From contig NC_047077.1 in the NCBI RefSeq assembly GCF_902459465.1, forward strand, positions 3,286,001 to 3,350,000: DNA of 64,000 bases. The letters are read 5' to 3'. Below are positions 3,446-46,071 of the stretch, piece after piece (the first letter of the stretch is position 1; every line of letters starts with the position of its first letter). A model generated the notes under the pieces. That model worked only from the letters and a program-made list of their open reading frames with translations, had not been told where the DNA came from and ran no database searches. The translations under genes were made by a program, and so were the position numbers. The stretch is from Asterias rubens (Eukaryota).

Positions 3446-6400
3446 CAGGCCAAACCTTGGCATACATTTTGAAGGAAGCATGTCATGTTTCTCACTGGGG
3501 TTGGCTAATGTATGCCCAAGCCAGGGTCAGCTACTAATGGATATTTGGCTGAAACACAGTAATCAATTCAAACAAAATAGCAAGAAACAATAAAAACGAA
3601 CGCATACATTTTTAAAAAATTCAATACATGGGCTTAAATTGTTCCTAAAGCATCTTAAACTAAAGCATTATTTACTATGTTACAATTTTAATTTGCCCTG
3701 AATGCCAGTTTAGGACAAACAAATCAAAACCCCTAACACAAGGAATTTATTTTCCTACATACTGTATTCATGTTTGTTTTAAAATTAAATCTGCCTTATC
3801 TAAACAAGTAGAACGTCAATGGCCCTGGAACATGCATTATCAGCTGATATTTCATTTTATGTCCACTTTTATATTTCTTTCCATTAAAAAGGCAATATGA
3901 TGCTTACAAGTAAATAATTTCACAGAATAATATGTTAACGATTTCTGGGATTCAATTTTCAGGAAGTATTTACTGGCAGCTAGAATGTTCATGTACATAG
4001 CTTTCTCAATGTACAATCCCAAATTGACTAGACCTGGACAACTCCTCCCATCCTATACAGCTCAATGTAACCCAGTTGCATGCATAATGCTATGTAGCCA
4101 GGGAAAGCCCTTTGGTGCAGCCAGTTCTTTGTGTGGACAACGCATGCAGAAAAGAGTCATCTGCACTCACTGTACTACAAGTAGGCCTACATGCAGTAGC
4201 AGTGTTCTAATGCATCAGCCAGTCTGCAACCAAGCATGTGTACGTGCGCATTGGCCGTACCATACATGTACTACATCTGCACACACCCGCACACAAAGGA
4301 TTTACAGCCACAAATTGTACAGGAATCTAATACATGTGATTGTAAGTGGCTTAGTGCAAGGATGTACAGTACATTGCCTTGTCTAGCAGTATTACAATTA
4401 GTTACAGTATACTACTTTTGAACTGAAAGTGCAACTTAAAATGTATACTCGTACTCTAACAGCATAATTTAGTTTGAAGCCTCTTAAAAGGGGTGGAGGG
4501 CATTGATTGAAATTAATTATTGTCTTGTTTATAAACAACAAAAGGCTAGGCAGCCCTATTGAGTTAGGAAATACCTCATTGATTATGTTGTGGTCAAGAC
4601 ATTGTCAAATGTACCCTGCAATGTTGGAACACACCATGCCAAAAAAATGGTCACCAGACCAACTTTTGTGCTTGCATACATTTATAATAAACATGTAAAC
4701 GTAGCCTCTTTACATTCCGCCATGTTTACAGTTCTGATGTGTCCCTTTTACCATTTTCTAGTTTCTTAATTAACCAGATGTATAGGAGAAGTAGAGCCTG
4801 TACAAAGACACTCAATTTCATTTTCTAATGATCTAAACTTGGAAAGTTCACATAGCAAAAATGGCGGTGTAAATGTTTCCATTTATAATACATCCTCAGA
4901 AAATGACTTACAGTGTACAACATGTAGAATATAGGGTACATTGTTGCATTTCTATAACTGTTTTAAATTAAAAGCAAATTTTGTCAACCACCTTCCAACT
5001 AACTGACCATAGAAATCAAATCTGAACCAGAAGGAGTGATTTTCTGAAGCTTCAGATTACCTTGCAGGAGGATTACAGGGTGTTGATTTACATAATAATT
5101 TATAAGACTTTCCATAAAATAACATAATGAATTTAAGATTTTATATCATAAATTAAGATTGGTAATGATCTCAAAATCAAATCAAAAGAAATCTGAACTA
5201 TTTCTTTCATCAACATTATGCTGGTAAAAGTTGTTTTGAGAAAAACAATTTTGTCTGAAACAGTGATGTGTACAAACAAAATATCATTCAAAATTAACTT
5301 TTCCCCCATTAAATTAACAACCTCCAGACAAATATCAACATGGGGACAAAAGAAAATGGGAAAACATGTATTCTTTGTTCTTGAAATTATGATTACTTTT
5401 TCCTCTGATATTTACACATGAAAAATGTATGAAAACAATGTTTAGAAGATTGCACTCTTCTTATAACAATTTTAGCATCAACACCTAAATGTCGCATACA
5501 AGTATTGTATGTCAAAATCAGAAAATAAAATCAATGCTAACTGAAAAGCAAGGTTGTTCACCTCAAAAAAGACAGGTCAATATATTTTTGCGAGAAAAAT
5601 TAACACGTGTCAAACTACAGGTCTGAGTTATCCCAATCTTCATGCCAGGTGAGGTAACTAAAGATAAAATAACTTCTGGTTGAATAAAAAAATTAAAATA
5701 AAAACAGAAGGTGACCACCTTATTACAACTTGTGCAAGAGTGCTTTTAAAACGTTAGGGAAATACAGACACTGTAGTAATGTCATGAATAGGAAAAACAT
5801 GTTGATGCTAGTTTTAAGATAAAAAATGGACAACAAATGATGTCTTGCCTGCATTATGTGACCTCCTCCTGTCATGAAAGAAAAGGCAAATGATCACCGG
5901 CTGATCTCCAAATTATCAAAAATGCTGTAAGTACAGACGCACAGTACATCCATTGCAGTGCTGCACTATGGGGAAGCTTGCGACAGAGCACCACGCTAGC
6001 TCATCGAAAAATCGTCAAGTTGCAGGTAGGTGGGTGGGGGAGAAAAAAAGCCCCTCGACGACGGCTTCCCACTGACTGACCACGGCAGACAGTTGATGAT
6101 TGTGATTACATATGCACGCCGTCTCTCAACTCTCTCTTTCTCTCTTGTCCGACAAGTCTGTTGGTTTCAGTCAAACCCCCAGAGCTAATGAGTCACTGCT
6201 TTGTGGCGGAGACAGTGTATCGGATCACACATCGCTGGGCCGTGGCGATCTGGGCACAGACCCTGGTGTGATGCATCGCCACAAGGCACCAAAAAAAAAA
6301 AAAAAACTCTGAGCATCGACAACAATGCTCACTCAACCTCCCTCCAGGGAGACGAGAGAGAGCAACCTTTTAAAAAACCTCCGCTACGCATTTTCCAACT

Positions 6401-24365: not shown

Positions 24366-24729
24366 AGCCATTGGACACTTTCTGAACAGAACAAAAACTA
24401 AAAGTTCACAGATTTACAAATAACTTATAGGGTTTACAGAAGGTAGTGGTGAAAGACTTCCCTTGAAATATTACTCCATGAAATGCTTTACTTTTTGAGA
24501 AAACATTAAACAATTATCAATTCTTGATATCGAGAATAACGGATTTATTTTAAACACATGTCATGACACGGCGAAACGTGCAGAAACAAGGGTGGGTTTT
24601 CCTGTATTTTCTCCCGACTCCGATGACCAATTGAGCCTAAATTTTCACAGGTTTGTTGTTTTACATATAAGTTGTGATACACGAAGTGTGGGCATTTGGA
24701 CAACTGTTTACCGATGTTGTGCGATTGCT
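24366..24729. mobile_element. TTAA-type MITE (agccattggacac family)
   Basis: Matches 37997-~38310, ~52780-52937 and 58917-59281. Confidence 0.7.
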
Positions 24730-25645
24730 TTAAGAAAAGTGTACTGGGTGGATTTCACAAAGACTTGAGACTAGTCTTATTTCCAGTTTGTACGAGTAAG
24801 TGAGCTACTCATCCTAACTTGGGACTAGTCCTAATAAGTCCTAACTCCTTGTGAATCGACCCCAGTCTCCTTTTACATGCACTACACAACATACATGTAC
24901 ATGTATGGGACCAACGACTTGAGGCTACATGTATACACCCAGTTTGTAGGATGAAGCAATGATGGTAATGGTCTTTACAAAAGGTCAATAAAAGAAATGT
25001 TTTCAGTAGTAATTTATAAAAACCTTGAAAGAACAAAAATAGCAAGGCAATACAAAACTATATAATGTATGCTAAATGTTTGTATGTTATAACCTTTTCA
25101 CGTTAGGCTCTTATATATCTACAATAGCAGTATACACTGATCACCTGGAAAGTATTGTGTCTGATGGCTTTTCATTTGAGGACAACTTTCATGTGGACCA
25201 CAAAACAATTTATGGAAGTTGAGATACTTTCATGCATGATATTTTATCCTTTGAAAACAGGAGGAAAACATTTTCTGGGCGGGCACAAGGGCTGACCTAC
25301 TTGTTCAAGAGAAGTGTAGGGTAAAAATTGTTGGCTATTTAATAACAGTTTTTACGATTGTTCCAAGAACAAATAAAAAACCAGACCGAAGAAGGAAAAC
25401 TATCTTGCCTGTATTACTTCTCAATTGTGTTGATAGCGGTCTCATCTCAAATCTCATACTCTATCTTGGTCTTCCAGAGCAAGAACTTGAACTATGTAGA
25501 ACTAAGACAGTACAAAGACATGTTTGTTAATTGAAAGAAAAAATCTCTTTGATTTCCTTTTTTATTTGAAAGTGAAATAGGCAGAGAGAGTACAATGGCA
25601 GTATTTACATGATTTCAAAACTCAAATAAATGTCAGGTAGATTAA

Positions 25646-26023
25646 AGGCAGTGGACACTATTGGTTATTACTCAAAATAATTATTGGCATAAAACCATTA
25701 TTGGTGACGAGTAATGGGGAGAGGTTGATGGTATAAAACATTGTGAGAAACGGCTCCCTCTGAAGTGCCATGGTTTTTGAGAAAGAAGTAATTTTCAGCG
25801 AATTTGATTTCGAGACCTCACATTTAGAACTTGAGGTCTCGAAATCAACCATCTAAACGCACACAACTTCGTGTGACACGGGTTATTTTTCTTTCATTAT
25901 TATCTTGCAAGTTCATTGACCGATTGAGCTCGAATTTCCACAGGTTTGTTATTTTATGCATATGTTGGGATAAACCAACTGTGAATGCTAGTCTTTGACA
26001 AATACCAATGGTGTCCTCTGCCT
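25646..26023. mobile_element. TTAA MITE (aggcagtggacac family, Kolobok-like)
   Basis: ttaa|aggcagtggacactattgg ... ccaatggtgtcctctgcct|ttaa. Confidence 0.85.
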
Positions 26024-26072
26024 TTAAATGGTGTTTGTAGCTTTACCTGATGTGAAGAATAAGAAGTAACTA

Positions 26073-26330
26073 TAAATACTAAATAGTAAACTTGCATCAC
26101 AACCATGTATAAAATCTCTCTTTTTAAGGAGTGTTGGCCCTGAAAAGAGCCTGTGTGGTCTCCAAGGACATTTAGAACAGTTTACTCTGCCTCTGCTCGT
26201 CTTCGTTCTCCTGACGAGGAGCAGAGTATACTGTTAGAAACATCAAGACCAAACCGGCTCTTTTCAGAGCCAACATTCCCTCAAAAGAACATACATGGTT
26301 GTACCCGCATGTTTACTATTTAGTATTTAT
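26073..26330. mobile_element. Fold-back PLE-type element with a central hammerhead-like motif (family B, 26206-26249, +)
   Basis: Arms ataaatactaaatagtaaac..caaccatgta..ctgaaaagagcc and its reverse complement; centre CTGACGA-g-gagcag agtata ctgtta-GAAAC-ATC-aagac. Confidence 0.65.
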
Positions 26331-26548
26331 TGTCAGGCAGATTGTTGGTTTTAGTAAAGCACCTTTTTGTACAAAAGAAAGTATGTTAAACTAGAAAAGC
26401 ATTCGTCTCTAAAAATACAAGTCTAGAACCAACAATGATTTTACATGCACTGCATGTCTCTTGATTGAGCCATTTGAAGACGATTGAAACAAGCAACATG
26501 GCGAAACAATAATCATCCAAACCCCAACAATGTTATTGGTTTTCACCT

Positions 26549-29500
26549 TCAGACAGCAGCTGGGCTTTCCACTTCACCAGTTACCACCTCTGCATGTCCC
26601 TCATCCATAGGTTCCCCTTCTGTCACCAACTTTGCACCTCCAATGGCATGTGAACCAGTAACTGCCTGTATGCCTCCCACAGCCTGTGAACCAGTAACTG
26701 CCAGTGAAGAAGTAACTGACTGTGCACCAGTAACTGCCTGTGAACCAGTAACTGCCTGTGAAGAAGTAACTGCAGGTAGGCCTCCCACAGCCTGTGAACC
26801 AGTAACTGCCTGTATGCCCCCTACAGCATGTGAACCAGTAACAGCCTGTGTGCCTCCCGCAGCCTGTGCAACCATAACAGCCTGTCTGCCTGCCACAACC
26901 TGTGCTTGACCTCCTGTTAATGTCGGGGCACCTACCACTGCCTTACCACCTACCATGAACAGGCCTGTTGGAACTGTCTTTAATCCTGCCACCTGTCCAG
27001 CTGATAGCACTTGCATGCCTGCTGCACTGCATGCTGCAACCTGATTGCCTGACACAGGTACAGCTACCATCTGCGCTGGGGTCACTCCTTGTACTGGCAT
27101 GTTTGATGCCTGTTTACCTACTGTACTTGGTGGGCCGGCCATGACCGATGTCTGACCACCTACAACATTTGACCTCTGTGCACCCTGCCCACCAGAAGCT
27201 GGCCCCTTCCCAACAACCATGATTGTTTGCCTCCCTTCCTTCGTCCGGACTGAAAGCATGTTTTGTTTCTCTACCGGCTGACCCACTGTAAGGTTCTGCC
27301 CTGACCTCTGTGCACCCTGTCCACCAGACGCTACATTTGCCCCTGGTGTATCTGGCTTCTTCCCAACAACCAGGATTGTTTGCTTGCCATCTCTCATCCG
27401 GACTGTAACAGTGTTATGCTGCTCTGGCTGCTGACCAGCTGTAAGGTTCTGCCCTGCATCGATGGCCCCTCTGAACATCTGAGCAAACAAGCTATTCGGG
27501 GCTGTCCTACAAATCTTCTCCATGAACTTCCTCTTCTCTTCAGCAGATGGCTTTGGAATCTTCCCCAACAGGGACTGGGCAAATATGTCTTTCTTCTTGA
27601 ATAGATCTGTGATCTTGACAGGTCTAACGCTTTCATCTTGGTCGTCTTTAGATTTGCGGGTGCTTGTCTGACTGTCCGTTGAGTCCATCTCTCTGACAAG
27701 ACGCTCTACACGAAACAGAACAGCTATCACATGATTACAGCACTGGTACAAGTCATCTGTGCATGTGCAACAAGACACAACAATGTCCCCATCTGATGTC
27801 ATTAAAATCTTGCTAATATTGGCAGGTTTCTTTGCATCATATCCATCTCCGCCTGCATTCAGCTGAGCAACAGACCCCCTCACAAAGATGAAATCTGTCG
27901 AACTCTGAACTTTGATACTTCGAACGCAGACAGATTCCAAGTACTGGTATGCTTTTTTGGTTTTATAGTCGCCCAAGTAGTACGTGTCAAACGCTTCCTT
28001 GGTTAGGATGTAGTGGAAGATCTTTCCAACATCTAGGATTGGTAGAGCTGAGATATCAACACTCCAGGCATTGAGGACATCAGGATCTGTCAGACCATAC
28101 TCCTCCAAGATGGCAGTATACTCTCCCTTGCTCTGCTCCTGCTCGATCTTGAATTTCTTAGGCTCGCTGGGTCCTGCATTATTCTTCCGATTTTGAGCAA
28201 GTAAAGCACGTTCCACCAGTTCAGCTCTACGGCCTGTTGTTAAAGTGAAGAATCCAGAACAAATTAATGAAAGATTTGAATTTTTGTTTTATTTCTTGTT
28301 ATTCATAAATACCCCAGACACAGGCAGTCCTATTGGTTGAAAAGGTGGTCACATCCATGTTTACCTGGTTATAAATGGCTGACCAGTTGGCTAAAGTGCG
28401 TTTGGCATTCATAGCCATTCCTGTATTGGTACGCACGCTAAAAGTGGGCGCTAATACTGAGAACAAAATCAGTACGGTACTCGACATATAGCTGTAAAGT
28501 GTGTGGCCTGCAATTTGATCATTGCCAAAATGGCAAGAGGACAGGAATTTAACAATCTTACAAAAAGACACGTTTAAAGACAGTGGACACTATTGGTAAT
28601 TATCGAAGACCAGTCTTCTCACTTGGTGTATCTCAACATATAAGCATAAAATAACAAACCTGTGAAAATTTGAGCTCAATTGGTCGAAGAAGTTGCGAGA
28701 TAATAATGAAAGAAAAAACACACTTGTCACACAAAATTGTGTGTTCTAAACTTGAGGTCTCGAAATCAAATTCGTGGAAAGTTCCTTCTTTCACGAAAAC
28801 TACATCACTTTGGAGGGAGCTGTTTCTCACAATGTTTTATACTATCAACCTCTCCCCATTACTCGTAACAAAGAAAAGTTTTATGACGACAATTATTTTG
28901 AGTAATTACCAATAGTGTCCACTGCCTTTAATTACAGTCGGGTATTCATTAATGGGAATTAAGGATTATTGATGACTTGGTCTTAAATGATCATTTGAAA
29001 CCTTGCATGGTCAAGACCACGGCCTGATTTCATAGAGCTATAAGCACAACAAGTAACTGGGCAAATTATAAACAAGGCAAAATACCAGCAAAAATACCAT
29101 GTCACATCAACAATTTGTGACTGGTGTCCTGCTCAATTCTGCTAGGCAGAAAATTGTTAAGCCTTTTTTTTTCCTTGAAGGCAGTGGACACTATTGGTAA
29201 TTACTCAAAATAATTATTAGCATAAAACCTTTCTTGCTGACAAGTAATGGGGCGAGGTTGGTGGTATAAAACATTGTGAGAAACAGCTCCCTCTGAAGTG
29301 CCATAGTTTTGGAGAAAGAAGTAATTTTCCACCTCAAGTTTAGAACTTGAGGTCTCGAAATCAACCATCTAAACGCACACAACTTCGTGTGACAAGGGTA
29401 TTTTCTTCTTTCATGAGATCTTGAGATCTTGGTTGAGATACACCAACTGTGAAGGCTAGTCTTTGACAATTACCAATAGTGTCCACTGCCTTTAAGAAGC

Positions 29501-29759
29501 TAGCAGCTCTATGAATTTTGGCCAATGTGATAAAGGAACTTGCCTTTGGCCTGTTCCTTTTTACGCACGACCATGCCAGTTTTGAACTCAGGATGATCCA
29601 AATCTTACCAACAATCGAGTCCCCGAGATTAAGTAAGAAGAATTTCAATTCTGCCGTGGAAAACTCCAGGAAGTCTTCGATGGTGAGCTCCGATTCTGGT
29701 TCTTCAGATTTAAGTTGAACAGTCTCAACAAGACTACTGTCTATGGCAAGGTATTCCAT
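26549..29759 (-). CDS. SAP domain + SWIM-type zinc finger protein with low-complexity C-terminus, ~611 aa, probably transposon-derived
   Basis: Coding exons 29609-29759 (ATG 29759; donor GTT G|gtaaga) and 26549-28233 (acceptor aacaacag|GC). The phase-1 join builds a SAP-like motif DFLEFSTAELKFFLLNLGDSIVG/RRAELVERAL. SWIM-like CTC-x6-CCNH followed by VIAVLF. Probable 5'UTR exon with donor at 31764. Confidence 0.8.
26650..26900. repeat. Coding 18-bp tandem repeat (gcctgtgaaccagtaact), giving VTGSQA-like hexapeptides
   Basis: Repeated units are visible directly in both DNA and protein. Confidence 0.85.
28578..28927. mobile_element. TTAA MITE (aggcagtggacac family) in an intron of the SAP-SWIM gene
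   Basis: TTAA on both sides, family TIRs. Confidence 0.85.
29021..29523. mobile_element. ggcc..atttcatagagct MITE with a nested aggcagtggacac MITE (29179-29491)
   Basis: Outer ends ggcctgatttcatagagct / agctctatgaattttggcc; the inner element has its family TIRs. Confidence 0.75.
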
Positions 29760-29836
29760 TTCTTGAATCAGTGTTTGGGGATAACTGTCAAATAAATACA
29801 TCAGAGCATTGTACAAGAAACGGGATTCTAAAGTAA

Positions 29837-30195
29837 AGATGCTATGTCAGATTTTTGGCCCCAAACATTAAAAAATAGATTTTTTTGAGTGAATGGTATT
29901 TCAAAGAGTATCACCCGCTCTAACGAAAAAAAGTTGAACTTAATTACTTTTTATGGTCAGGAACCATGACAAAAATTGAAAACATTTCTGATGAAACACA
30001 TAAGAATTGGTCATGGATATATTGTCGCACTTATAATTTTGAGCACTTTTTTTCACTGCTACTAATAATTGGCGGACTTTTTCGAGCAATGGCTCAAATG
30101 AAAGCTTGTAACTTTTTCGACCCCCATCAAAATACCTATTGAATTTTAAATCAAAATTTTTGGGTCAAATCGGCCAAAAATCTGACACAGCATCT
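29837..30195. mobile_element. TTAA-type MITE (agatgct family)
   Basis: TIR agatgctatgtcagatttttggcc / ggccaaaaatctgacacagcatct; flanks gtaa/ttaa. Confidence 0.8.
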
Positions 30196-30652
30196 TTAAA
30201 AAAGCTAACGAAGGTGTGCAAAAGTTAGTATAATTATTTGTTATAAATCAGAATGTCAATTGTTGTGGCCCAAATTAAATTGTGGCAAAAGTCTGTTTTC
30301 ATCTGCAGTGCATTAAATAACATTCAAAATACATCATGGTGCACTGCAAATGCAAAACCCTGTTGTACTACATTAGTTTTAATAGCCTATAGCCCTTTCC
30401 CTTATCAGTTGCCGAAAGGCATTGTGGGAAGGAAAAGGGAGCTTACAAACATGTACCATGGAGGAAGAATTTGTACAATGCCCCTTTTTCCTTCCTCTTT
30501 TTCCTCCAACAATTGAGAAAAATCCGGCAAGGCTGGGGGGGGGGGGGGGGGGGGAGAGTCGCGATAAGGTCTAAAGGCAAATTTCAAAAATCCAACGAAC
30601 ATGACATGTCCTTGATTGTTTCATTGGCTTACGCATTCAGTGTTATTCCGGT

Positions 30653-31325
30653 GTCATGACAAAAACTGTCCGCTGAGCATGTGCAGTAGACCCCAGACAC
30701 TATTTGGCACGGATTACGTGACAAATAGTGTCCGCCCAACAAGTATTGTCCGGGCGTCATGCTGCGGGCGCGTGCTGATTATTTATAATCAAATAAATAC
30801 AAACCATGGAGGAATGTATACAACCAAGAAAGCGTTCAAGTAAATACAAGCCAAGTTAAAAAATAGAACACTTACTCTCAAAAGTATGTCAAGATTATTT
30901 TTGTACTATGGTAAAACAGTGCAGGTTTTACCGATTGTGCTAAAAGTGACGAATTATTCATAATAAAATACGACCGAGAATGCCAAGTCAAGTTACAAAG
31001 TAGACGAACTCTTAATCTCAAAAGTATGTAGATTAGTATTTTACTTATGTAATTAAAAAGAGCAGGTTAAAAGGTATGAATTGTGAACGTGCTAAATGAT
31101 AAATAATACAAATATTTATATATAAATCAATCACAAGCAGGAAAGCGTCACAAAAATGTAAAACTAAAAGGTTAAAAATGAAGCAGCAAGGCACGCAATG
31201 ATGATGCACGCTTACCGCGAACACTATTTAGCAAGCTTCCGTAAACGTCAAAGACGCTTGACCAATCAGAGCGCAATATGCTAATGAGTGGACACTTACT
31301 GCCAGCGGACAGTTTTTGTCATGAC
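30653..31325. mobile_element. TIR element, 23-bp perfect TIRs, no evident TSD
   Basis: gtcatgacaaaaactgtccgctg / cagcggacagtttttgtcatgac. Confidence 0.75.
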
Positions 31326-31764
31326 GAGAGCTTTATTCTATTTCTAAATGAATGAATGAAACATTTCTTTAAAAATTAAAAAGCTGTTGACTTACATTTA
31401 ATACAATACAAGCAATCTTTACAGTTTACACTGCCAAAACTGTGTTTAGCATGGTCAGTAAGAACATAGCACCATCATTGTAATAAAAAGAACTGATGAA
31501 CCGTTCGTTACCAATCAATCATTGGATTTTGAGGTAGGTTCTACCTCCCATGGTCATGATGGTATGATGGTTAAACATCAGTTCAGTGTCAGTGTTAAGT
31601 GTCAGTTCAGTACAGACAGTAGGCCTAGCTAGTGATGTCTGTTTGCAAGTTACACTTACAGACAGTGTGATTCACACTGTGCCGTCAGTCATCAAGTTTT
31701 TGCAGAAAATACTTCTTCTTTATCTCCCTTAATCTAGGTCATTTACACTGAATTAAATTCTTAC

Positions 31765-31925
31765 CTGTCAAGAAGGTTTGACCGAATACATACAGCCAGA
31801 AAGCAGGCATAGGAAACGTCCAAGTGCAAACGAAATCACACGTTTTCTCAGTGATGGTCCTTTTTTTGTACTTCGAAAATGGCGAAAAAGTAGCAAACAT
31901 GCAAGGCGCCCTCTGTCGGTTCTAT
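31765..31925 (-). promoter_or_regulatory. Putative first exon and promoter of the SAP-SWIM gene
   Basis: Donor gacag|gtaaga at 31764; YY1-like aaaatggcg (~31877) and CTCF-like ccgacagagggcgcc (31905-31919, minus). Confidence 0.5.
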
Positions 31926-33045
31926 AAAAATCTTTTCCCAGGGACTGCTTTATTTTGTTGTTTCAACAAAAGAATAAAGGAAATGTTTGGACCTAAAGGG
32001 ATCTTTTGAAACATTGCGATGACCGTCAAGTTGGATCAGCACACCTTTGAAATGTATTGTTCTCTGTGCTTATTATTAGTAGCGTTTTATTTTGTATTTC
32101 ATTTCTGCCAGCCCTGGCATAAGCTACGCCCTTCTCTACCACCCGCCGAGTTTAAAAACATTTCAACGACTAGATTTATCTTCTTTTTTTTGTACCTGCT
32201 TACCAAACAAAGTGACAGAAAAACAAAACACTTGACTCTTTTTATTCGAGTTAAAATGTTATTAATATTTATTTGGTTTGAGGACAAAGCTGAATGCTTA
32301 TTGTAGGATGAGATAAATAATGTTATAATAATAATATTACTAGTTTTTATTATAAAAATATAATTATAGTTTACAATTTTTGACAAGGCACAATCAAACC
32401 CATTTTAATGTGATATTAAAAGAATTGCAGTTTCCCATGAAATTAGTTTATATGAAAATAGTTTGAATTTTTGTATATCAGAATTCAATTTGATTGCAGC
32501 TTTCAGTTAAATTTTTCATTTTTTGTTTTGAGCTCTGAAGTAGGTTTACAAAGCAAATCCTTTAGAATTTAGTGAGTTTACAAAACATGATTTCCCATTA
32601 TTGAAGTCAGAAAATTAACGTAGGCAAGATTTGACAAAGTGATTTGTTTTGTGCCAGTCAATTATACTGTTGATAATAAATACAACATGATCTATGGCTC
32701 TATATGGCAAGATCTCTGGCTCTAGGTTCACCACAATGCATGATAAAAAGAAAATGGCCGACATTGAACGAGGTGAAATTATTCAGCTTGGCTACTGGCT
32801 TGTGATGATTGTGCAAACAACTTGAACCTTTCTTTAAGGTTTAAAGATGGATTAATTGCAAACTCTCATGCAATTTGTTTCAAGATTGTAAAGTACCAAA
32901 ACCAAAGTTTTTCTCCAAACTCTTGTGACAGCTTAGGGATTTCCCCTCACAAACCATTGGAGTCTCCCATCTGAAAGCTTTGCACTTTGAGATTGTCTAA
33001 AATGTAAATTCATAAAATATGACAAATTTTTAAGAACCACAGTAT

Positions 33046-35329
33046 TCAATGCGAAACCTTGCTAAGCATTTTACAAACTTTATTCATCTGTGGGCGGTTT
33101 TTAGGATTCCTCCTGGAGCACTTTTTGCCAATGGATTTCAGGAAGTGCACATTTGCTTCTTTTCCAACTAACTTGAAGATTTTCCCAAGGGAGTGAACAT
33201 CAGCAGCCATAGCAAGTTGAGCTTGACCCTTGATTCCCTCAGGTGTCAGCTTAGCAAATGTGCAATTCCCAAGATCACATATCTTAGCTCTCCAACACCT
33301 CCAGTTACCATCAGTGGCATACAGGAGGATGTTATCAGGGCTAAGATCTTGATGAATATACCCCTGATCATGAAGATGCTGGAGTCCTTGGCAGATGTCT
33401 TGCCCAATCTGCAACCAGTCCTTCTCTGGAATATCTGAGATGATGACTTTATTATTTCTCAATGCATCCTCCAGGGTTATGTTTTCTGGAATGGATTCAT
33501 TGCCAACAAACTCCTGTAGGATGCATCGGAAGGGAGATTGGTGGACAACTCCAATTACCTCAGGAAATGAGGGGTGCCCTTGGACTAGGTGGTGGGCATC
33601 AAGTTCATTACGGAATTCATCCTCCGGATGATGGTTGTAAACAATCTTTGCTGCTGATAGTCTATCATCAGGCATGACTTTAACGAGGCGTGTTGATGAC
33701 GTCTCACCACACCCTAACTCTAACCACTCTCCAAATATGCCTTCCTCTGGAGCCAATTCACTGGGTTGGTACAAACGGGTTCCAAAGTAGGTAGGTTGCC
33801 CAAAATGAGTATAAAACCCTGATCTGTTGGCACATTTTATTGAAGGTACAGGTTTGGGGGGAGTAGGTAGAGATCTATCATCCAAAGACGGAGCTGTCTC
33901 TTTGGCAGGAGATGCAGTTGAGATATTTGTTTCTGAAGATGGAGAAGTTTCTGAAGTCTCAAAGGATGACACTGAAGAGGCAGAACAATTTGATGATGTC
34001 TCAAAGCTCTGCTCATCTTGCACAAAGTCAGTAACTCTTGATTGTGTCTCATCATTGATTCCAATCTCTTGCCTGTTTAGAGATGTAAGAAGACACTTAT
34101 TATTCAATCATTATTAAAATATAAACACAAGTCTTTGTTCTCACAAACAAAGAAATCAACAGGGCTAGAGTTTAGAGGAAAGATGATACTGACTGCTTGT
34201 GTTTTTCAAAGGAGTGAGCTGATTTAAATAAATTATATGTTTTGTTATAGTCCCTTCTTGTATTAAAAATGTTCAACAATAACACTTAAAAAGAAGGAAA
34301 AAATCAATTAAAATTTAAAACTAGTAAATATTGACTACTTTTACAAACCTTGAGGACTTGATTTGTTGGGCGGAGCCAGATTGCTTTGGGGTCAGTATTT
34401 TGGCGACCTTGTCTTTCCGCCTAAAGATTGCCCGGATTGCTTTTCTCAAACCAGACATACTCTTTTGTTTTTTCCTGCGAAGAAGAGATGGTCGAGTGTC
34501 ATTAGAGAATGCTAACAAGAAATAAAAGTTTTGTGCTTGTTGTTGTTTAATTTTTTGTGTTACTTGTCTTAGTCCAGGCCTGGAATTAGGCCATGGCCTA
34601 TGTTGCCCCTGGTCTTAGCCTTGCTGACCATCAAAAGTTTCCTACTGACTTTAAGATTTCCGAATGGTAGTGCCCTTTACAAACTGAAAAATGGCCTTGC
34701 CCTTTCAACATGTTCAAAGATGAAATTCCATGCATGTCAGTCCAGATATGAGATATTATTTTGAATGATTAAGTTACAATAAAAACACATTGGAGAGCAT
34801 TCAGATATTAAGTTTTAGTTCAGATCAATAAAACAACAACCAAACATCATCTGTGCCCTCTCCTTCACCTATTTGTTGTTATGAACTTGAAATGCAGCCT
34901 TTTCTAGAACTCATTTCTTTACAAAAAAATACAATATTTATGCTTTCTTTCTAGCAAAACAGCGCAGGAATTTCATCTTAAAAAAGCCACAGCCATTTTC
35001 ATTTTGAAATGGGCACTTCCACTGAAAAAAAATAATCTTAAAAGTCAATCAGAAACTTTGAAGGGGCACCAAGGCCAACACCAGGCAGCCAGGGCCAAAG
35101 GAGACCATGCCCCTCCATTGCCCTCCAATCCAAGGCCTGCATGTAATTCCAAGCCTGTAGTGTTTGCATTGAGGTCTTACTTTTGAGTAGCTGTACTCGG
35201 CTTGTTGTATTGAGTCTCAGCAGACTCTTTGGGTAGTGCCAGCTTGACACTCATGAATGACTTGAGCTCTAAGTCAGAGGTCATCATATCTTGCATGGCT
35301 GCCATTTTAGGTAATCTGGGGGAGGACAT
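33046..35329 (-). CDS. Divergent compact protein kinase (TKL/tyrosine-kinase-like fold), ~433 aa
   Basis: Exons 35181-35329, 34349-34474 and 33046-34072 (phases 2/2, 1302 nt). LGCGETS G-loop, AAK lysine, alphaC Glu, HQDLSPDN catalytic loop, DLG, TPE, DVHSLG, C-terminal NRP. Ser/Thr-rich linker N-terminal to the domain. Probable UTR exon with donor at 35789. Confidence 0.85.
34575..34736. mobile_element. Degenerate CAGGCCTG-ended MITE, 6-bp TSD with 1 mismatch
   Basis: caggcctggaatt ... gaaattccatgcatg; flanks ttagtc/tcagtc. Confidence 0.55.
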
Positions 35330-45018: not shown

Positions 45019-46071
45019 ATGGCTACTAATGACTTGAGGCTTTCGGTTCCACTCTGTCTGCCGAAACATCCCCAGCCCTTCGCGGTCATCAGTGAGCACT
45101 GGCAGGACAAGCTCCAACTCAGCTCACCACGTTCAGACAATACTGACTCTCCGGAAGATGATATTTACAGCTTCGGTCAGGTCTACGAGGAGAGCCTTTA
45201 CAAACTCATTCACAAACATCTTGAGCTGGACACCGACAATCGCCTGGCATACGTTGGTGCCAATAAAGGCAGCCTTGCAGAGAAAATCAGGGAGAAGTTT
45301 TGTCTTTTGCAGCCGATGGTCAACATTTTCCCGGGGCTTATTCATTACCAGCAGACACCCAATCAGAGGATGCTACCCTTCAAAGTATGTCATGTCGGAG
45401 CGGAAGAGTACTTCCGTCAACTTGCAGACGATCTGATCAAGGACCACAAGGAAGCGCCTTTTGATAAAATCATCTTGAAGGACTCCGTGGAGCACTTCAC
45501 CAACCTCGCCGAGACCTTCTCGCACATTATGAGAACATTGAGTGAGACTGGCAAGATGTTGATTATTCACCGACCAGGACCCATGAGCACCTTGCCGGTC
45601 TTCAGTGAAGCCACACGGCGTTTTGCCGAGGAGGACTCGACAGACGAACCGTACATCAAGATAATCCGGAGCCTTCAGGATGCCAAAGTGGACGCCAAAT
45701 GGGAGGTGGAGACCGTACCCATTATCATGCCAAAGGTTAAATGGCTAGCAATGCTCCAGGAGCGGTTCCCGCCTCAGATGGAGATCATAAGTAACTATCA
45801 AGTTCAGACTGGTCTCCGGGAACTCACAGAAGGGATGTTCAAATACCAAGGGGAGCAAGTTGAGTTCTTCGACCGACTGCTATTGATTACGGCATCGCAT
45901 AGAATGAAGAACAGTGAGTATCCGAGTATTCAGCGACATGGAGCAGCCGCCGGGAAACCTTACCCGGGTCTAATGGACATGAAGTACACGTTAAAAGTCA
46001 CTCCAGATATTTATGGTCACGTGAACAAACGAGTGGAAGAAGAGGACAAGAGAAACAAAATATTATTTTAG
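45019..46071 (+). CDS. Class I SAM-dependent methyltransferase-fold-like protein, 350 aa, single coding exon
   Basis: Long ORF with coding-like composition; degenerate motif I (LAYVGANKG) and FDKIILKDSVEHF resembling motifs II-IV; acceptor tacgcag at ~45005 just before the ATG implies an upstream non-coding exon. Confidence 0.75.
   Translation: MATNDLRLSVPLCLPKHPQPFAVISEHWQDKLQLSSPRSDNTDSPEDDIYSFGQVYEESLYKLIHKHLELDTDNRLAYVGANKGSLAEKIREKFCLLQPMVNIFPGLIHYQQTPNQRMLPFKVCHVGAEEYFRQLADDLIKDHKEAPFDKIILKDSVEHFTNLAETFSHIMRTLSETGKMLIIHRPGPMSTLPVFSEATRRFAEEDSTDEPYIKIIRSLQDAKVDAKWEVETVPIIMPKVKWLAMLQERFPPQMEIISNYQVQTGLRELTEGMFKYQGEQVEFFDRLLLITASHRMKNSEYPSIQRHGAAAGKPYPGLMDMKYTLKVTPDIYGHVNKRVEEEDKRNKILF

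Follow-up and report, generated by a model that had tools for sequence, protein, structure and literature searches.

A spliced sea-star gene probably domesticated from the SAP-SWIM module of an ISL2EU transposon accessory protein

The window analysed here, a stretch of 64,000 nucleotides from Asterias rubens, carries a three-exon gene on the minus strand, with a 5'UTR exon at 31847-31765, coding exons at 29784-29609 and 28233-26549, and a product of 611 aa. Joining 29759..29609 to 28233..26549 on the minus strand gives a CDS of 1836 nt, that is, 611 aa and a stop codon. The features of the locus are as follows.

31765-31847, minus strand: 5'UTR exon, a minimum extent with the true transcription start at or upstream of 31847; RNA contig X19 rec17 runs from 31765-31847 to 29784 and on into the coding exons
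29785-31764, minus strand: intron 1, within the 5'UTR, GT..AG, from the RNA-contig joint and splice sites read from the sequence
29609-29784, minus strand: exon 2, with 25 nt of 5'UTR, the ATG at 29759-29757, residues 1-50 and the first base of codon 51
28234-29608, minus strand: intron 2, 1375 nt, phase 1, GT..AG, its junction crossed by RNA contigs X1, X18 and X19
27461-28233, minus strand: first part of exon 3, a conserved and probably transposon-derived block, residues 51-308, from the alignment, hhalign, dN/dS and an AF2 model
27689-28057, minus strand: predicted SWIM module, residues about 110-232, from the AF2 model of the Patiria orthologue and fold matches
27731-27769, minus strand: SWIM zinc-ligand signature CxCx7CxH (C206, C208, C216, H218), from conserved columns
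26552-27460, minus strand: low-complexity C-terminal tail, residues 309-611, from composition
26649-26904, minus strand: array of 18/36/54-nt tandem repeats coding for the tail hexapeptides, from Tandem Repeats Finder (direct-repeat family D1)
26551-26549, minus strand: stop codon of the 611-aa gene, from the sequence
26300-26548, minus strand: 3'UTR, minimum extent; RNA contigs cover 26300-26701 at a depth equal to that of the CDS

The gene is expressed as a spliced, host-type mRNA. The initial annotation, made from the letters alone, had described an intact spliced ORF of about 611 aa with an intron inside its SAP motif, and contigs from three RNA runs (X1 rec3, X18 rec10 and X19 rec17) bridge this coding splice exactly; exon 2 codes for the first helix of the SAP-like motif, which intron 2 cuts between ...DSIVG and RRAELVERALL. 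The separate 5'UTR exon that it had placed near 31.8 kb is likewise real, joined to the coding exons in a single contig (X19 rec17) across an intron with a canonical donor (GTAAG, 31764-31760) and an acceptor AG at 29786-29785. An AATAAA lies within the 3'UTR at 26331-26326. Sequence from the gene is present in 12 runs from 6 studies of one organism, and partly in a sister species.

The gene lies beside a kinase-like ORF and a methyltransferase-like gene. No transposase ORF and no ISL2EU element were found in the window, and Rfam returned no family at gathering threshold between 25000 and 32500. As first described, the gene lacks flanking TIRs: a search for inverted pairs around it found none that brackets the transcription unit, the pairs detected belonging to a dispersed SINE-like repeat that has copies both in the intron and downstream of the gene. 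Intron 2 is packed with high-copy SINE-like repeat copies (28574-28931 and 29175-29495, word depth 1e5-1e6). The region as a whole is rich in dispersed repeats.

Residues 1-308 of the protein comprise a divergent SAP motif, a SWIM module and three basic helices. The part encoded by exon 3 (residues 51-308) runs from the second SAP helix through a helical linker, the SWIM module and an acidic Ser/Asp linker to the basic helices, which end in a PNSLFAQMF motif; mean column identity in this block is 76% (alignment A1, five sea-star sequences). An exhaustive search of a 1.8-billion-protein library recovered 206 relatives, with HMMER E values of 1e-18 to 1e-25 for YqaJ accessory proteins and a gap between the sea-star proteins (1e-163) and all others (1e-25 or weaker). 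The nearest relatives outside sea stars are SAP-SWIM-YqaJ-PHD proteins of 590-706 aa, and hhalign pairs the sea-star protein with transposon proteins at 99.9% probability (E 1.6e-36, columns 26-269, 29% identity). The resemblance of the SWIM region to YqaJ accessory proteins of transposons, which the initial annotation had pointed out, is thus far beyond chance. YqaJ occurs in 9/9 long relatives scanned, most of them also with SAP, SWIM or PHD, and a YqaJ-like region in 50/163 retrieved relatives, including nearly all of at least 400 aa that span the profile; these YqaJ-bearing proteins are known from molluscs, cnidarians, a brachiopod and a hemichordate. Two of them, P0006 and P0077, each sit on a contig of about 5 kb, convergent to THAP/HTH_Tnp_4/DDE_Tnp_4 transposase genes, and one of these contigs has perfect terminal inverted arms of 119 nt. 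A SAP-SWIM-YqaJ-PHD protein beside a THAP/HTH/DDE_Tnp_4 transposase is the published ISL2EU layout (PMC4482050; also PMC4122938, PMC9179366).

Compared with the ISL2EU accessory protein (for example P0006, on contig L003 with its THAP-HTH-DDE_Tnp_4 neighbour), the whole N-terminal part is homologous: both have the SAP motif, the helical linker, a SWIM with CxCx7CxH, a PVKIxD segment and a PNSxF helix, in the same order of secondary structure in AF2 models. The sea-star protein differs in lacking YqaJ, the PHD finger, a neighbouring transposase and TIRs, and its gene in having introns, a 5'UTR exon and a new repeat tail of ~300 aa. Homology stops at the linker that precedes the nuclease and still includes the pre-nuclease PNSxF motif. 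In P0006 this linker, of ~90 aa at pLDDT 31-58 (AF2), ties the SAP-SWIM module to the nuclease, and on this model a cut within it leaves the module intact.

The CxCxnCxH ligand signature of the SWIM zinc finger (PF04434) is present, the four ligand columns being fully or at least 90% conserved among 39 sequences from sea stars and transposons. Pfam scores the SWIM at 13.3 bits (E 0.064; 13.4 bits in Acanthaster), under the gathering cut-off of 19.6, and the best SWIM score of the homologous transposon proteins scanned is also slightly under it (19.1 bits). The SAP motif (PF02037) reaches 13.6 bits in the spliced 45-aa peptide against a cut-off of 23.9, which the aligned segment clears in the transposon relatives P0008, P0010, P0018 and P0077 (25.1-30.7 bits). 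Both domains fall below the curated cut-offs and owe their names to the predicted fold and to homology with relatives that score above them.

In the AF2 model of the Patiria orthologue (pLDDT 78 over the conserved block, 85-95 in its core), the SWIM module is predicted as helices, a four-stranded sheet and a long helix. Its best structural match in VIA-align is the SWIM region of ZSWIM8 (9rwz_M; Z 9.3 against 5.9 for the next match, rmsd 2.9 A, 99 residues), and the top matches among Swiss-Prot models are all SWIM proteins (YwqB, ZSWIM4/5/6/8; Foldseek probability at least 0.97), so that a SWIM fold is present as modelled. A Foldseek search of the PDB with the whole model gave nothing significant and SAP domains alone; ZSWIM8 surfaced only in the wider VIA-align search. 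Model residues about 20-72 resemble the SAP domains of E1B-AP5, SLX4, PIAS1, Hcc-1, MKL1 and Tho1 at Z 4.1-5.6 (Foldseek probability 0.8-0.9), a range that can be chance for short helical motifs; matches to SAP-domain folds overall span Z 4-5.9 in VIA-align. ZSWIM8 (PDB 9rwz chain M), ZSWIM4/5/6 and Bacillus subtilis YwqB have the same sheet-plus-helix module over residues about 113-233 (Foldseek 0.97-1.00), but at 13-18% identity and with no family relationship at the sequence level, and the sea-star protein has neither their Cullin-binding boxes nor their large C-terminal regions; the common fold does not show a common function. The analogy initially drawn to SWS1/ZSWIM7 found no specific support. 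SWS1/ZSWIM7/Shu2 are also small SWIM proteins without enzymatic domains and are not known to have a SAP motif; they are absent from the HMMER matches and from the Foldseek and VIA-align structural match lists.

The tail (residues 309-611) is rich in G/V/A/Q/T/S, consisting of Gly/Val/Ala/Gln-rich repeats with an internal duplication of ~45-50 aa and QAVTGS-type hexapeptide repeats. Pfam and hhalign detect no similarity to the C-terminus of the transposon proteins, and the 611-aa protein has no Pfam match to YqaJ and no match to an HMM of the YqaJ region, in agreement with the first reading that an unrelated Gly/Gln/Val-rich tail takes the place of YqaJ and PHD. A decayed nuclease was considered as the source of the tail and ruled out (hhalign probability 0.07% against the transposon profile). 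Against a 96%-identical relative, the tail shows a dN/dS of 0.62 and large indels.

The conserved domain, with a dN/dS of 0.056 (dS 0.30, 257 codons, NG86, against the L005 species), is under strong purifying selection; against Patiria, dN is 0.23 and dS is saturated. Identity to the orthologues in Patiria (LOC119724577) and Acanthaster (LOC110987979) is 69% over the initial 240 residues of the exon-3 protein; two closer relatives reach 96% and 80%. Five sea-star sequences all keep an intact ORF, two database searches found one protein per species, and the Patiria gene has the same two-coding-exon structure, intron position and phase-1 exon end. The initial annotation had called for syntenic single-copy orthologues with dN/dS below 1; orthologues, spliced transcripts and selection are all in evidence, whereas synteny is not, as the Patiria locus with its 10-kb flanks has nothing but the gene in common with the window. 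The methyltransferase-like neighbour, used as a query, matched many orthologues in echinoderms, with Patiria and Acanthaster not among them. Close orthologues of the SAP-SWIM gene were found only in sea stars.

In a tree with transposon-encoded SWIM-YqaJ proteins, unrooted and with a long sea-star branch, the sea-star clade (100/100, on a stem of 1.87) is nested among YqaJ-bearing proteins, within one subclade of them (support 93/81 and 100/99; 95 and 97 for the N-terminal partition). A chimeric origin was also considered, the N-terminal tree placing the sea-star protein inside the P0006 clade and the C-terminal tree outside it, and was rejected, as the C-terminal part fits both placements in AU tests (p 0.59, 0.585); the N-terminal part alone discriminates, with p 0.027 against the urchin group.

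We conclude that this is probably a sea-star (Asteroidea) host gene domesticated from the SAP-SWIM module of an ISL2EU accessory protein, with loss of the nuclease. Domestication is well supported because of the homology, the transposase neighbours of relatives, the orthologues, the shared intron, the low dN/dS, the spliced transcripts and the lack of bracketing TIRs; of the exapted transposon protein first proposed, SAP and SWIM kept and nuclease lost have held up, while the specific link to SWS1/ZSWIM7 has not. The N-terminal module of the ISL2EU (PIF/Harbinger-like) accessory protein would have been cut in the flexible linker just before YqaJ, the fragment later acquiring introns and a promoter as well as a new low-complexity tail. 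So read, the gene is a new case of a known type of event, the taming of a transposon gene by its host. NAIF1 and HARBI1 are vertebrate genes domesticated from Harbinger's two ORFs, NAIF1 having its source in a Myb/SANT-like DNA-binding protein whose transposase partner was co-domesticated. The event is of the same type and in the same superfamily, a non-transposase accessory ORF becoming a conserved host gene, but the sea-star gene has its source in a YqaJ-type accessory protein of which only the non-catalytic part was kept. The two-ORF biology of Harbinger is described in PMC9179366.

Because the whole nuclease is gone, the protein is not expected to process DNA ends. Its SAP-SWIM module is acidic, with a pI of about 4.8, whereas that of the transposon proteins lies at 5.9-8.5. 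The sea-star protein has also lost their Cys-rich CTSxPCxWN motif, in whose place an acidic Ser/Asp linker stands; DNA binding may therefore be weakened, and the acidity of the module speaks mildly against its contacting DNA directly. Residues 253-308 are basic (pI 10.3, KKK/KRK motifs), and a KKFK motif is a sea-star-specific insertion relative to the transposon proteins. We tentatively suggest a non-catalytic nuclear adaptor, a role that is possible rather than probable, in which the SWIM module, with the ZSWIM8 SWIM region as its nearest solved look-alike, would hold a partner protein; the divergent SAP motif, the basic helices and KKFK would provide nuclear import and weak contact with DNA or chromatin; and the fast-evolving Gly/Gln/Val repeat tail would make multivalent, low-affinity interactions.

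Alternatively, by analogy with truncated transposon proteins elsewhere, the protein could be a trans-dominant inhibitor, a decoy that keeps the targeting or transposase-binding module without the nuclease and blocks ISL2EU transposition. The second ORF of related Harbinger elements is required for transposition (PMC9179366), so a truncated copy could interfere. What was kept is precisely the non-catalytic N-terminal module as far as the linker, and in the tree a long stem gives way to tight conservation. We nonetheless think a decoy unlikely: neither an ISL2EU element nor a transposase was found in the window, conservation long enough to saturate synonymous sites outlasts the activity of most transposon families, and the ISL2EU accessory ORF has no known function according to PMC4482050. 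A sea-urchin protein, LOC594793 (P0024, 340 aa, SWIM-type domain-containing protein), is also short, homologous to the SAP-SWIM module and without YqaJ, ending about 15 residues past the same PNxxF motif; it is basic (pI 9.0) and groups with the YqaJ-bearing P0045, P0073 and P0127, apart from the sea-star clade, and grouping it with that clade is rejected by AU tests (p 0.0046 for the whole region, p 0.027 for the N-terminal part). That the ISL2EU-helper module was tamed twice in echinoderms, separately in the sea-star and the sea-urchin lineages, as a nuclease-less decoy occupying transposon DNA ends or transposase, is an improbable scenario; if true, it would be a host defence made from the transposon's own targeting module. 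Our literature search found no paper that describes SWIM in the helper proteins of ISL2EU, the domestication of such a helper, or any of the three LOC identifiers.

The direction of transfer might also be reversed, an old host SAP-SWIM gene having been captured by ISL2EU with the sea-star gene as the surviving host ancestor. An unrooted tree with the sea-star clade alone on a long branch would permit this, but we consider it very unlikely given close orthologues in sea stars only, YqaJ-bearing relatives spread across several phyla, the position of the sea-star clade inside one YqaJ-bearing subclade, and homology that ends at the pre-nuclease linker with PNSxF included. That the gene is a decaying or non-autonomous ISL2EU fragment, transcribed by chance and without host function, as the abundant dispersed repeats and fast-evolving tail might suggest, is hardly credible and already contradicted by the intact ORF, the domain dN/dS, the identical position and phase of the Patiria intron, the single protein per species, the lack of TIRs and transposase, and a spliced mRNA with a dedicated 5'UTR exon in several studies.

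New regulators are known to arise from domesticated transposon genes, and nearly all of the cases studied trace back to transposases or to the Myb-like Harbinger helper. If domesticated as we propose, a host gene that keeps only the SAP-SWIM end shows this end to be an autonomous, selectable module, and offers a handle on what the module binds and hence on the role of the helper protein in transposition. It also adds to the sea-star gene set a lineage-restricted gene of clear origin, to which sea urchins may hold at least one independent parallel.

The gene lies on the minus strand, where an ATG at 29759 starts a 151-nt coding stretch closed by a GTAAG donor, and beyond an AG acceptor at 28235-28234 the frame stays open up to a TGA (26551-26549). 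Joined, 29759..29609 and 28233..26549 amount to 1836 nt, or 611 codons and a stop, in a window without N runs. The coding intron is in phase 1 and splits a SAP-like motif between ...LGDSIVG and RRAELVERALLAQ. When contigs from four public RNA runs of the same organism were placed on 26300-32200, a single contig spanned the predicted splice in three of the four (X1 record 3, X18 record 10, X19 record 17), joining 26781-28232 directly to 29608-29784; the one-base ambiguity is a G common to both sides. The intact spliced frame of about 611 aa and the intron within the SAP motif, both proposed in the initial annotation, are thus borne out, as is a separate 5'UTR exon near 31.8 kb, because the X19 contig extends to an upstream exon that closes at a canonical GTAAG donor and is spliced to an AG acceptor at 29786-29785. 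RNA contigs also cover 26300-26701 at a depth matching that of the coding sequence, implying a 3'UTR of at least 250 nt. Expression is of host type: the gene sequence occurs in 12 runs of this organism, drawn from 6 studies, and sister-species runs contain about half of its words.

Features of the gene and its surroundings
31765-31847, minus strand: 5'UTR exon (X19 RNA contig and GTAAG donor)
26649-26904, minus strand: 18-nt repeat array encoding the QAVTGS-type hexapeptides of the protein's tail
28574-28931: dispersed SINE-like repeat copy inside the coding intron
29175-29495: dispersed SINE-like repeat copy inside the coding intron
25641-26027: dispersed SINE-like repeat copy downstream of the gene
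33046-34107, minus strand: kinase-like ORF, 353 aa (protein-kinase profile, E 9e-19)
45019-46071, plus strand: methyltransferase-like gene, single exon, 350 aa

This gene originates from the helper protein of ISL2EU, a PIF/Harbinger-like transposon whose second ORF has the layout SAP-SWIM-YqaJ-PHD. A profile of five sea-star sequences, searched exhaustively against 1.84 billion representatives, returned 206 hits at E <= 1e-3, among which the sea-star proteins (1e-163) stand far apart from all others (2e-25 or weaker). A YqaJ-like recombinase domain sits at about residues 340-540 in each of the nine long hits that were scanned (482-706 aa); six of them have SAP or SWIM at E <= 0.01, and five end in a C-terminal PHD finger; a home-made HMM of the YqaJ region found the domain in 50 of 163 retrieved relatives, including nearly all profile-spanning ones of at least 400 aa. 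The relatives with a named source belong to Mytilus, Mercenaria (where several loci share one 90% cluster), Hydra, a jellyfish, Lingula and a hemichordate. Genomic context was read for two relatives: P0006 (631 aa) is convergent to a 421-aa THAP + HTH_Tnp_4 + DDE_Tnp_4 protein on a 5078-nt metagenomic contig, and P0077 (698 aa) to a 558-aa HTH_Tnp_4 + DDE_Tnp_4 protein on a 4967-nt contig, an arrangement that has been published for ISL2EU (PMC4482050). The initial assignment of the SWIM region to the N-terminal part of the YqaJ accessory proteins of ISL2EU is therefore correct. The P0006 contig also carries perfect 119-nt inverted arms (194-312 and 4960-5078), which are likely long TIRs, the alternative being a contig-end assembly artefact.

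Profile-profile comparison with eleven full-length relatives (probability 99.9%, E 1.6e-36) pairs sea-star columns 26-269 with transposon-protein positions 5-242, and the segment FMEKICRTAPNSLFAQMF aligns to the relatives' FLxKxxxxxPxxxF helix directly before the nuclease. Nothing in the 303-aa tail resembles the C-terminal half of the relatives (probability 0.07%), in keeping with the earlier view that an unrelated tail replaces YqaJ and PHD. Pfam alone passes neither motif (SWIM 13.3 bits, SAP 13.6 bits); the four SWIM ligands are conserved across 39 aligned sequences. The AF2 model for residues 1-312 of the Patiria protein, built from a 39-row alignment (mean pLDDT 78, core 85-95), matches over residues 113-233 the SWIM region of ZSWIM8 from the ZSWIM8-CUL3-AGO2 structure (Z 9.3, rmsd 2.9 A, 99 residues; runner-up 5.9), and residues ~20-72 resemble a series of SAP domains at Z 4-6, a range that short helical motifs can reach by chance. 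Among Swiss-Prot models the best matches are YwqB and ZSWIM4/5/6/8 (probability >= 0.97). The P0006 model has the same element order, followed by a ~90-residue linker (pLDDT 31-58), a nuclease domain (pLDDT >90) and a PHD finger, so that the SAP-SWIM module is predicted to be structurally separate from the nuclease; sea-star homology stops within this linker.

The sea-star gene has lost the catalytic parts and, it appears, the mobility parts as well. No transposase ORF occurs within the window, and every long inverted pair in 24500-33000 is explained by copies of a dispersed ~330-390-nt SINE-like repeat, none bracketing the transcription unit, which upholds the reported lack of flanking TIRs. 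This repeat starts TTAAAGGCAGTGGACACTATTGGTAATTA, lies in both orientations, including within the 1375-nt coding intron, and has a word depth of 1e5-1e6 in the RNA contig sets versus 13-235 for the exons; the family must therefore be extremely abundant, and it is either transcribed or part of many transcripts. A second high-copy element (29834-30198; depth ~1e5 in all four RNA runs) sits in the 5'UTR intron with 27-nt terminal inverted arms (29834-29860 / 30172-30198). A fold-back element at 26069-26333, at or just past the 3'UTR end, has arms at 26119-26161 / 26246-26288 and 26069-26095 / 26307-26333; a hammerhead had been suggested there, and no Rfam family reaches its gathering threshold anywhere in 25000-32500. 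The kinase-like ORF lies 1.2 kb upstream of the 5'UTR exon and matches only profile positions 6-150 of 263, that is, the N-lobe and catalytic loop without the rest of the C-lobe. The methyltransferase-like gene has homologues in brittle stars, sea urchins, sea cucumbers and crinoids (61-69% identity) and in molluscs, brachiopods, annelids and Ciona (~40-47%), with no Patiria or Acanthaster protein among the matches.

Using the opening 240 residues of the exon-3 protein, a word-indexed search recovered four sea-star proteins: P0001 (96% identical), P0002 (80%) and the orthologues Patiria miniata LOC119724577 and Acanthaster planci LOC110987979 (69% each). P0001 opens with 12 residues of translated intron and thus stands for exon 3 only; in Patiria an intron of 498 nt interrupts the coding sequence at the same codon and in the same phase as here. 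The first ~310 residues are common to all sea-star proteins (mean column identity 76%), and the tails are distinct low-complexity sequences in each species. Long-term purifying selection has acted on the gene: against the 96%-identical relative, dN/dS is 0.056 in the conserved block (Nei-Gojobori, 257 codons, dS 0.30) versus 0.62 in the tail, which also has large repeat indels, and against Patiria dN is 0.23 with synonymous sites saturated (pS 0.82). This pattern is that of a gene that is old and under constraint, with a tail that evolves freely. The window's tail contains a ~45-50-aa duplication and, relative to that of the 96%-identical species (26552-27460 versus L005:229-1656), one extra ~45-aa unit (GQNLT...GGQGAQRS) and about 68 additional residues of hexapeptide repeats; the closing ~23 residues (EGEP...ESPAAV) are retained. 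A 141-aa plus-strand ORF (26484-26909, …ACEPVTAC… repeats) was rejected as a separate gene, being the reverse reading of the tail's 18-nt coding repeat.

An unrooted maximum-likelihood tree built from 53 N-terminal regions unites the five sea-star sequences in a single clade (100/100) with a stem of 1.87 changes per site and very short internal branches, nested among YqaJ-bearing proteins including P0006 (93/81, within a 100/99 clade). A sea-urchin protein, P0024 (Strongylocentrotus purpuratus LOC594793, 340 aa), is homologous to the SAP-SWIM module, lacks YqaJ and stops about 15 residues past the same pre-nuclease motif; it falls in the other main clade, alongside YqaJ-bearing proteins, and a joint sea-star and urchin clade, a group chosen after the tree was seen, is rejected (AU p 0.0046). 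P0024 may be a second case, truncated or domesticated independently. Separate trees for the halves of the region looked discordant at first; in AU tests the C-terminal half is equally compatible with both placements and the N-terminal half alone rejects the urchin grouping (p 0.027), so there is no evidence for a chimeric origin.

After capture the sea-star proteins diverged from those of the transposons: they lost the CTSxPCxWN motif that follows the SWIM helix, where an acidic Ser/Asp stretch now stands, gained an invariant PKKFKIE insertion, acquired species-specific repeat tails, and became markedly acidic in the SAP-SWIM part (pI 4.8-4.9 versus 5.9-8.5), while retaining a basic segment at 253-308 (pI 10.3). 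A literature search found no paper on the gene, on SWIM in ISL2EU helpers or on a domesticated ISL2EU helper. The protein could possibly be a decoy against ISL2EU transposition; the proposed analogy to SWS1/ZSWIM7 was supported by none of the sequence or structure searches. We infer that the sea-star protein may act as a non-catalytic adaptor in which the SWIM module would make the partner contact, and this contact, together with the weak SAP motif, the basic helices and the KKFK/KKK motifs, suggests a nuclear or chromatin role.
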